Source of the DNA: Hemiscyllium ocellatum
Taxonomy: Eukaryota
Assembly (NCBI RefSeq): GCF_020745735.1
Contig: NC_083411.1
Coordinates: 45,751,395 to 45,815,394, forward strand
Reading direction: 5' to 3'
DNA: 64,000 nt
The notes under the pieces: model-generated
The model's input: the letters and a program-made list of their open reading frames with translations, nothing else
Told to the model about the DNA's origin: nothing
Databases searched by the model: none
In this document: piece by piece, positions 34,763 to 35,740 of the stretch
How positions within the stretch are numbered: the stretch's first letter is position 1
Layout of the letters: every line of letters starts with the position of its first letter
Made by a program: the position numbers and the translations under genes

Positions 34763-34860
34763 CTGCACTGTTTCCGTGGAGGGGGCGAATTTCTCCGTGT
34801 AGTTCACACTGAATGCACACCGAGATGTCTGTGATCTCGGCGTCGCCCTCACTTTGTCAG
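34763..34860 (-). other. IRG gene A, putative non-coding exon 1 (5' end disrupted by insertion)
   Basis: Consensus donor CAG|GTAAGG at 34763/34762; CpG-containing; conserved in three copies; lies downstream of TATA/CCAAT/ISRE-GAS. Confidence 0.7.
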
Positions 34861-34908
34861 TATTGCTGGAAAAGCGCAGCAGGTCAAGCAGCATCCAAAG
34901 AGCAGTAG

Positions 34909-34944
34909 AGTCGACGTTTCGGGCATGAGCCCTTCTTCAGGAAT
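34909..34944 (-). ncRNA. Minimal hammerhead ribozyme motif (Penelope type)
   Basis: AUUC-CUGAAGA-A-GGGC-UCAU-GCCC-GAAAC-GUC-GAC: intact core, stem II and palindromic ACGU stem III. Confidence 0.75.
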
Positions 34945-35041
34945 GAGGAGAGTGTGTCCAGCAGGCTAAGATAAAAAGTAGGGAGGAGGGACTGGGGGAG
35001 GGGGCTAATATAAAAAGTAGGGAGGAGGGCCTAGGAGGTCT

Positions 35042-35279
35042 TAGCCCCCCGCCCCTAGTCCTTCCTCCCTACTTTTTATATTAGCCCCCTCCCCCAGTCC
35101 CTCCTCCCTACCTATTATCTTAGCCCCCTCCCCTAGTCCCTCCTCCCCACCTTTTATCTTAGCCCCCTCCCCCTAGTCCCTCCTCCCTACCTATTATCTT
35201 AGCCCCCTCCCCCTAGTCCCTCCTCCCTACCTTTTATCTTAGCCCCCTCCCCCAAGTCCCTCCTCCCTACCTTTTATCT
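35042..35279. repeat. 39-40 bp minisatellite, 6 copies
   Basis: Unit tagccccctcccc(c)tagtccctcctccctacct(t/a)ttatct starting at 35042, 35082, 35121, 35160, 35200, 35240. Confidence 0.95.
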
Positions 35280-35740
35280 TAGCCTGCTGGACACACTTTC
35301 CTCATTCCTGAAGAAGGGCTCATGCCCGAAACAACGATTCTCCTGCTCCTTGGATGCTGCCTGACCTGCTGCGCTTTTCCAGCAACACATTTTCAGCTCT
35401 GATCTGCAGTCCTCACTTTCTCCTCACTTTGTCAGTAAACAAGGAAGCTCGATATTTAAATACAAATTTTGAAAGTCAATGGGCAGCAAATCTGACCAAT
35501 GAAAATCAAAGGCCAAGCAAGGTCACTTGTTACTGGGGAGATTTTGCTTTTACAGGTTACACAAAAAATGAGAATCTAAACAAAACACAACTTTACCCCA
35601 GACAAGAAGTTGGGAACTGGTATCTGCTTGAATTTCAGATGCAGCCACTGGGCTGGATAGTTGGAGATGGGTGGGTTCAAACAATTCCTATTTGACGAAA
35701 TGACTTTGCTCTGTTTAAAAGTAGCCCTTTAGCTCCATGA

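Follow-up and report, generated by a model that had tools for sequence, protein, structure and literature searches.

A hammerhead-bearing fold-back insert in one of three near-identical IRG promoters of Hemiscyllium ocellatum is probably a truncated Penelope-like element

We propose that a 559-bp insert (34863-35421) in the putative leader of the gene IRG-A represents a Penelope-like element (PLE) that is non-autonomous and was dead on arrival, in which two copies of the 3' UTR/pseudo-LTR (pLTR), both 5'-truncated, are joined head to head, and we put the probability of this reading at roughly 0.88. The DNA analysed, hereafter the window, is a stretch of 64,000 nucleotides from Hemiscyllium ocellatum (NC_083411.1, positions 45,751,395 to 45,815,394 of the forward strand), and all coordinates below are those of the window. 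In each arm of the insert, a minimal hammerhead motif is accompanied by a 40-bp minisatellite and by a terminal sequence of ~80-100 nt. The hammerhead is the processing motif of the PLE family itself, occurs in at least two of its sequence subfamilies in the window, and is not tied to the IRG gene. The insert is not a new kind of element, inverted, tail-bearing and hammerhead-carrying PLE fragments being already documented. Taken as an element it contributes little, and what interest it has comes from its lying in one of three near-identical interferon-responsive promoters.

Results

The insert is bounded by an exact 16-bp direct repeat, CCTCACTTTGTCAGTA (Table 1). Within the window, its left flank aligns to 3327-3940 and 59616-60150 and its right flank to 3928-5105 and 60138-60659, at 95-98% identity, and each of these two paralogous promoters holds one uninterrupted copy of the target, near 3928-3940 and near 60138-60150. 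The presence of a single target copy in each paralogous locus indicates that the insert is real and that it is younger than the tandem IRG duplication behind the three promoters. The first-pass annotation had described a 559-bp insert with a 16-bp target-site duplication, and both the exact repeat and the empty sites in two paralogs bear this out. The last two bases of the canonical end of the element (..CTTTCTCC) overlap the repeat, so that the length of the duplication is to be given as 14-16 bp and not as a fixed value. Target-primed microhomology between the target site CTCACTTTGTC and the element end CTCACTTTCTC was considered and dropped, since the junction retains both sequences and the targets of the other copies show no such likeness.

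The IRG coding exons are found on the minus strand at 17850-19061 and 51145-52626 (Pfam IIGP, E 1e-94 and 1e-97, respectively); both are open, and the encoded proteins share 85% identity. The interferon-stimulated response element (ISRE) GAAAGTGAAACT occurs three times in the window and no more, once for each paralogous promoter, where 0.25 matches are expected. The earlier placement of the insert, upstream of exon 1 and at the predicted start site, is consistent with our reading, in which the insert lies between the ISRE-bearing promoter and a conserved candidate splice donor. Two start sites can be proposed from inspection of the sequence. The TATA-like box at 35453-35462 would place a putative start at ~35430, at the edge of the insert. 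An alternative start, ~265 bp upstream, would follow from a second such element, a TATA-like/Inr-like pair that is found a short way downstream of the ISRE, near 35720-35700. Under both readings the insert would fall within the leader, provided that the candidate donor is real.

Table 1. Positions in the window of the insert, its proposed parts and the neighbouring promoter features.
Feature	Position	Strand	Basis or remark
Left target-site duplication copy	34847-34862	.	CCTCACTTTGTCAGTA, exact direct repeat; single copy at the empty sites of both paralogs
Right target-site duplication copy	35422-35437	.	Exact direct repeat; empty sites in paralogs
Left arm, proposed PLE 3' UTR/pLTR copy	34863-35038	- (sense, same as IRG-A)	Sibling alignment, blastn within the window, repeats
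Minimal hammerhead, intact core	34913-34940	-	Descriptor search; features of the PLE min-HHR class; helix I flanks 34944-34909
Six 40-bp minisatellite units, right arm	35039-35284	+	C-rich on plus strand, G-rich on IRG-sense strand; Tandem Repeats Finder
Right arm unique part, proposed PLE 3' UTR/pLTR copy	35285-35396	+ (sense)	Alignments; ends at short end ..CACATTTTCAG
Proposed PLE tail	35397-35421	+	Compared with 9080-9178, 7819-7914 and 7485-7571
Candidate exon-1 splice donor CAG/GTAAGG	34754-34765 (G of GT at 34762)	-	From sequence; identical in three paralogs
TATA-like box TATTTAAATA	35453-35462	-	Sequence reading; kept in paralog at ~60170, altered in paralog at ~3960
ISRE GAAAGTGAAACT	35741-35752	-	Abuts GAS-like TTCCCGGAA; ~300 bp upstream of the insertion site

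The longest inverted pair of the insert joins 34860-35004 with 35244-35388 over 145 nt at 92% complementarity (12 differences in 145 positions, or 8%), and the inverted complementarity reaches ~180 nt once the 40-bp repeats are included. The left arm is 5'-truncated inside the minisatellite, of which it retains two units, inverted, at 34964-35038; its 3' end, ..CCAGCAA, lacks the last 11 nt of the usual short end as well as the tail. In the right arm, Tandem Repeats Finder reports a period of 40 with 6.2 copies and 91% matches, and a regular-expression search for canonical G-quadruplex (G4) motifs finds one on the minus strand in five of the six units. The long inverted arms and the six G-rich repeats on the IRG-sense strand, both of which had been claimed in the first-pass annotation, are thus upheld. 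The sibling copy carries one such unit, at 8165-8204. The tail is present at the right end only and measures 25-27 nt, after a 10-nt internal deletion, compared with 36 nt in the sibling copies.

The hammerhead was sought with a descriptor written for the published features of the minimal hammerhead (min-HHR) class of PLEs, the control being a set of 100 first-order Markov simulations. The window gave three matches, each of them on the minus strand (34940-34913, 8141-8114 and 59335-59308), and the simulations gave none. The focal core reads, from C3 to A9, CUGAAGA, followed by a bulged A, a helix II of 4 bp (GGGC/GCCC) with the loop UCAU, G12-A14 (GAA), A15.1, C15.2, G16.2, U16.1 and C17, with a predicted cut after 34913. 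All conserved core nucleotides are present on the IRG-sense strand, in accordance with the earlier claim of an intact core there. Motifs of the PLE class carry two boxes, CUGANGA and GAAA; the base between A9 and 10.1 is left unpaired, G10.1 pairs with C11.1, the 15.2-16.2 segment is palindromic, helix III is virtually absent and helix I is short. They have also been reported as pairs 100-700 bp apart on opposite strands (PMC4209133). The focal motif resembles these metazoan PLE minimal hammerheads (Cervera and De la Pena 2014, PMC4209133) in both boxes, the bulge, the G10.1-C11.1 pair and the palindromic ACGU, and the paired arrangement on opposite strands is likewise the same. It differs from the Schistosoma PLE hammerhead families in its helix II, which has 4 bp where those have 7-8 bp, and it is missed by the Rfam models. 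The models Hammerhead_1, Hammerhead_3, HH9, HH10 and Hammerhead II gave no match at E up to 10 in 34600-35700, and none at the gathering score in the whole window. Rfam matches to plant and animal miRNA, snoRNA and IRES families over 34943-35166 were rejected, all of them being below the gathering scores and corresponding to the long GC-rich hairpin of the 40-bp repeats.

The hammerhead copies are not equivalent to one another. Helix I, compared over a few copies, forms three of four pairs in the focal motif (AUUC/GACU) and in 8141-8114 (GAUU), and four of four in the subfamily at 58151 and 9729 (GAAU). The motif at 59335-59308 belongs to a subfamily of ~74% identity that keeps the core; its free position 7 is a U, and AUGU stands where the focal motif has ACGU. 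The surrounding segment, 59293-59400 on the minus strand, provides a third intact minimal hammerhead, with a canonical CUGAUGA box. In the right arm of the focal insert, the hammerhead (35308-35335, plus strand) is disabled, as it reads GAAACAAC where the left arm has GAAACGUC, so that both the A15.1-U16.1 pair and the NUH cleavage triplet are lost; the absence of GUC from the antisense-arm copy had been recognised correctly in the first-pass annotation.

Sequence related to the arms was detected by blastn at about ten other places in the window. We take as the sense strand of the element that which shows the hammerhead boxes as CUGANGA..GAAA. Along this strand the copies are built alike, with, in this order, a 40-bp C-rich unit, then the hammerhead, then ~80 nt ending in ..CACATTTTCAG and, at some ends, a further 36 nt ending in ..CCTCACTTTCTCC. 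This 36-nt extension, which follows ..TTTTCAG, is one-ended in every fold-back copy, namely the focal insert, 7485-7571, 8053-9178, 58051-58240 and 16157-16264, the last of which is a member of a more distant subfamily. Besides the focal copy, four others in the window have head-to-head arms. Target duplications of 15-17 bp and of unrelated sequence surround 7485-7571, 9729-9802, 58051-58240 and 16157-16264. The copy at 9729-9802 has a single arm, truncated inside the hammerhead, and is nevertheless flanked by a 17-bp duplication; this points to reverse transcription from the 3' end and not to a cut-and-paste transposon. A DNA transposon of the fold-back or MITE type, bounded by terminal inverted repeats, would account for the long inverted arms and for the flanking direct repeat. 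It would, however, have to be reconciled with asymmetric ends bearing a tail on one side only, with a duplication length that varies from 15 to 17 bp among copies, with 5'-truncated single-arm copies that possess duplications, and with the linkage of the terminal sequence to the ORF of a GIY-YIG retroelement, and we give such an origin next to no weight.

The focal insert has no coding sequence, and its assignment to PLEs therefore rests on sequence that it has in common with an ORF-bearing sibling. The sibling at 8053-9178 shares the arm sequence at 93% and carries, on its minus strand, ORF pieces with homologs down to E 1e-50; Pfam GIY-YIG (PF01541) is matched by 9 of the 16 aligned homologs of one such piece. 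A second reading frame extends the endonuclease homology (E 4e-15, pairwise comparison), and this continuation in a second frame identifies the ORF as a frameshifted GIY-YIG endonuclease. A comparison of the PLE ORF with a protein atlas returned GIY-YIG and HTH_animal clusters, which serve as leads only. The ORF pieces from the window itself had no match in Pfam even at E 10, and tblastn with all homologs retrieved no reverse-transcriptase portion of this PLE family within the window. At the locus of a distant relative (L001), an RVT_1 ORF (E 1.8e-6, just under the cut-off) is located directly upstream of the GIY-YIG ORF and on the same strand. PLEs are built in this order, with the reverse transcriptase followed by the GIY-YIG endonuclease (PMC4209133, PMC8557442).

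A related proposition would be that the element is a non-LTR retrozyme, that is, a tandem hammerhead repeat that spreads through circular RNA. The presence of a hammerhead and an origin resembling a pLTR are in its favour, as is a 2026 preprint in which animal retrozymes are argued to derive from PLE pLTRs. The focal insert shares several properties with non-LTR retrozymes and SINE-like hammerhead retroposons such as Sm-alpha of Schistosoma and newt satellite 2, which are short and non-coding, bear a type I hammerhead with a weak helix III and are probably mobilised by PLEs. These consist, however, of head-to-tail tandem or single units able to yield circular RNA, whereas the focal copy is a single inverted dimer. 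Its copies are placed head to head and not head to tail, and its sole tandem repeat is the 40-bp minisatellite. In addition, each strand has at most one intact hammerhead, so that there is no unit bounded by two cleavage sites, and a retrozyme is accordingly considered very improbable. The reading as a truncated, inverted PLE insertion is the one that we retain.

Several sibling copies deserve mention in their own right. The copy at 7485-7571 belongs to the same PLE family and is a mini fold-back of 87 bp, made of a 31-nt inverted short end, 3 nt, 17 nt and the 36-nt tail; it is flanked by a 15-16-bp duplication, CTGAATTACCTCTTAA, and an empty site exists at 39376-39390 in the paralogous segment, from which it follows that this was a second insertion after duplication. 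The copy at 58051-58240 has a 17-bp duplication, CTCCAGTTAAAAGGGAG, and its tail on the left arm; its arms meet head to head in a short palindrome that lies within the hammerhead core, as would be given by snap-back priming. The PLE fragment at 8053-9178, with its frameshifted GIY-YIG ORF, has been duplicated along with the IRG unit; the duplicate, at 39644-40308, has undergone a ~670-bp deletion, one edge of which falls exactly at the hammerhead GTC triplet (39937).

About 4 of the 13 arm 5' ends in the window, for example those of 7819-7914, 9080-9178 and 16157-16264, fall between -2 and +5 nt relative to the cut that is predicted for the hammerhead, between GUC and GAUUC. It is possible that such ends constitute a DNA record of self-cleaved RNA templates. 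In Anolis, Frangieh et al. found no RNA ends at the hammerhead cut (PMC11167929). The fact that several copies start at the predicted ribozyme cut bears on the question of whether PLE hammerheads cleave in vivo.

The first-pass annotation had further suggested that an interferon-inducible promoter may now drive a leader able to self-cleave, to be edited by ADAR or to be sensed as dsRNA, with the paralog silenced or re-tuned as a result. Self-cleavage by the hammerhead would remove the cap from the mRNA. In its support, no core nucleotide is lost on the IRG-sense strand, the ISRE and the conserved donor lie on either side of the insert, and the coding exon of IRG-A retains an open frame of 403 aa with an IIGP domain. 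The predicted IRG-sense fold of the whole insert, however, is one hairpin with a stem of ~190 bp and a G-rich apical region, at -360.7 kcal/mol compared with -207 kcal/mol for shuffles (z -22), and the hammerhead is fully paired within it. The same annotation had considered fold-back pairing and ribozyme folding to be mutually exclusive, and a predicted hairpin that pairs the entire hammerhead agrees with this. Moreover, transcription in the IRG-sense direction produces the complementary arm first, so that the duplex may close as the hammerhead emerges. The predicted dimer of the hammerhead segment pairs through a GUCGAC palindrome and not through the ACGU of helix III; since this palindrome occupies the cleavage-site C, the thermodynamic prediction lends no support to an active dimer of the focal copy. 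There is, in addition, only one intact hammerhead copy on the IRG-sense strand, helix I contains a mismatch and the start site is putative. As for published activities, single minimal hammerheads of PLEs show no detectable self-cleavage in vitro and dimers have low activity (PMC4209133), and in the Anolis PLE, the one such element reconstituted in vitro, cleavage by the hammerhead needed the protein of the element (PMC11167929). The class is regarded as dependent on dimerisation or on that protein. Taken with the predicted ~190-bp duplex that buries the motif, this weak activity makes self-cleavage of the leader unlikely. The claim of a self-cleaving leader is not sustained: we assign it only a slight chance, and it would be the least likely of the effects proposed here for IRG-A.

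Discussion

The structure of the focal insert corresponds closely to what has been published on PLEs. Craig et al. describe PLE copies as highly 5'-truncated, with an adjacent inverted 5'-truncated copy that gives rise to inverted repeats, with a 30-40-bp tail often found at one end only and with hammerheads in the pLTRs (PMC8557442). Arkhipova et al. report rotifer PLE copies with inverted pLTRs, duplications of 9 or 10 bp and a 31-bp tail on one pLTR (PMC3846280). Similarly to copies with inverted pLTRs such as Pen2a_Av of Adineta vaga (PMC3846280; scheme in PMC8557442), the focal insert combines a head-to-head 5'-truncated copy with a one-ended tail of the 30-40-bp kind, a short target duplication and a pLTR hammerhead, and the longer copies of its family carry a GIY-YIG ORF. 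It departs from the Pen2a_Av type in that it has no ORF at all and in the expansion, within its pLTR part, of a G/C-rich 40-bp minisatellite (6 + 2 units). Its target duplication is also longer, at 14-16 bp compared with 8-10 bp in the rotifer examples.

We propose the following scheme for its formation. The head-to-head form would arise if the PLE ribonucleoprotein nicked both DNA strands and primed reverse transcription on each of them; Frangieh et al. have shown for Anolis that both DNA strands are cut and extended by the PLE protein (PMC11167929). The unequal ends may reflect reverse transcription from two adjacent internal RNA sites. Such a pair of start sites, the spacing of which corresponds to the tail, has been described for the Anolis PLE (PMC11167929). 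The divergence of 8% between the two arms, set against 2-4% between the paralogous flanks, hints that the arms were copied from different template RNAs or that copying was error-prone. The argument for two templates is weakened by the consideration that the promoters may be homogenised by gene conversion, the coding exons being 9.4% diverged.

With regard to IRG-A, transcription from upstream of the insert would lengthen the leader by ~560 nt. The IRG-sense strand of the insert contains five upstream ATGs and five canonical G-quadruplex motifs. The enlarged leader would fold into a duplex of ~190 bp with a G-rich apex, and scanning and translation would be hindered by this structure and by the upstream ATGs. 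The same duplex would amount to an interferon-induced dsRNA in which the hammerhead is locked, probably with no cleavage. Stable hairpins in 5' UTRs block scanning, and leader features of this kind could expose dsRNA to ADAR, PKR or Dicer. It can be hypothesised that the insert, when transcribed in the IRG-A leader, disables or damps the paralog by way of a translational block, ADAR editing or dsRNA sensing, its long duplex, its upstream ATGs and its G-rich repeats being the active features. The predicted stem (~190 bp, about -361 kcal/mol), the upstream ATGs and G4 motifs of the sense strand, five of each, and the location of both candidate start sites upstream of the insert speak for this hypothesis. 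The coding exon of IRG-A, however, shows no decay, and the start site may be inside or downstream of the insert. We regard such an action as possible but rather doubtful. If the insert is transcribed, a block of translation or the formation of dsRNA through the hairpin, the upstream ATGs and the G4 motifs would be more plausible than self-cleavage.

A more far-reaching hypothesis would be that the PLE fold-back has been co-opted. In that case an interferon-induced dsRNA hairpin of ~190 bp, with an apex rich in G-quadruplexes, would either feed innate dsRNA sensing or act as a switch, controlled by ADAR or Dicer, through which the output of IRG-A would be set apart from that of its two neighbouring paralogs. 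The hammerhead would be active only together with the PLE protein. We consider co-option to be very unlikely. A parallel is provided by pairs of inverted-repeat Alu elements in primate UTRs; within a transcript these give long dsRNA, which undergoes editing by ADAR and can change how the transcript is exported or translated. If transcribed, the insert would resemble these pairs in placing retroelement-derived inverted repeats within one transcript. It would differ from them in the class of element and in the host lineage, in being a single insertion at the 5' end where Alu pairs are two separate insertions in the 3' UTR, and in that the transcription of the focal insert is putative.

The three near-identical IRG promoters offer, within one window, a natural comparison with and without the insert for the effect of a PLE fold-back on an interferon-inducible gene. 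The family to which the insert belongs was active after the IRG duplication, as two insertions, 34863-35421 and 7485-7571, can be dated to this period.

Some observations on the surrounding IRG locus may be added. The promoter/exon-1 regions 3327-5105, 34250-36600 and 59616-60659 are nearly identical (2-4% diverged). The coding exons 17850-19061 and 51145-52626 have a DNA identity of 90.6%, with similar divergences at the three codon positions (9.7, 6.7 and 11.9%). Near-identical promoters in the presence of diverged coding exons suggest homogenisation of the promoters, fast or positively selected evolution of the protein, or both. The minus strand of 29900-34250, in the putative first intron of IRG-A, contains reverse-transcriptase fragments (FADD motif, conserved C-terminal domain) that are read as a decayed LINE and that account for much of the extra length of this intron relative to that of the paralog. 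An ORF of 701 aa with an RVT_1 domain is found at 42384-44489.
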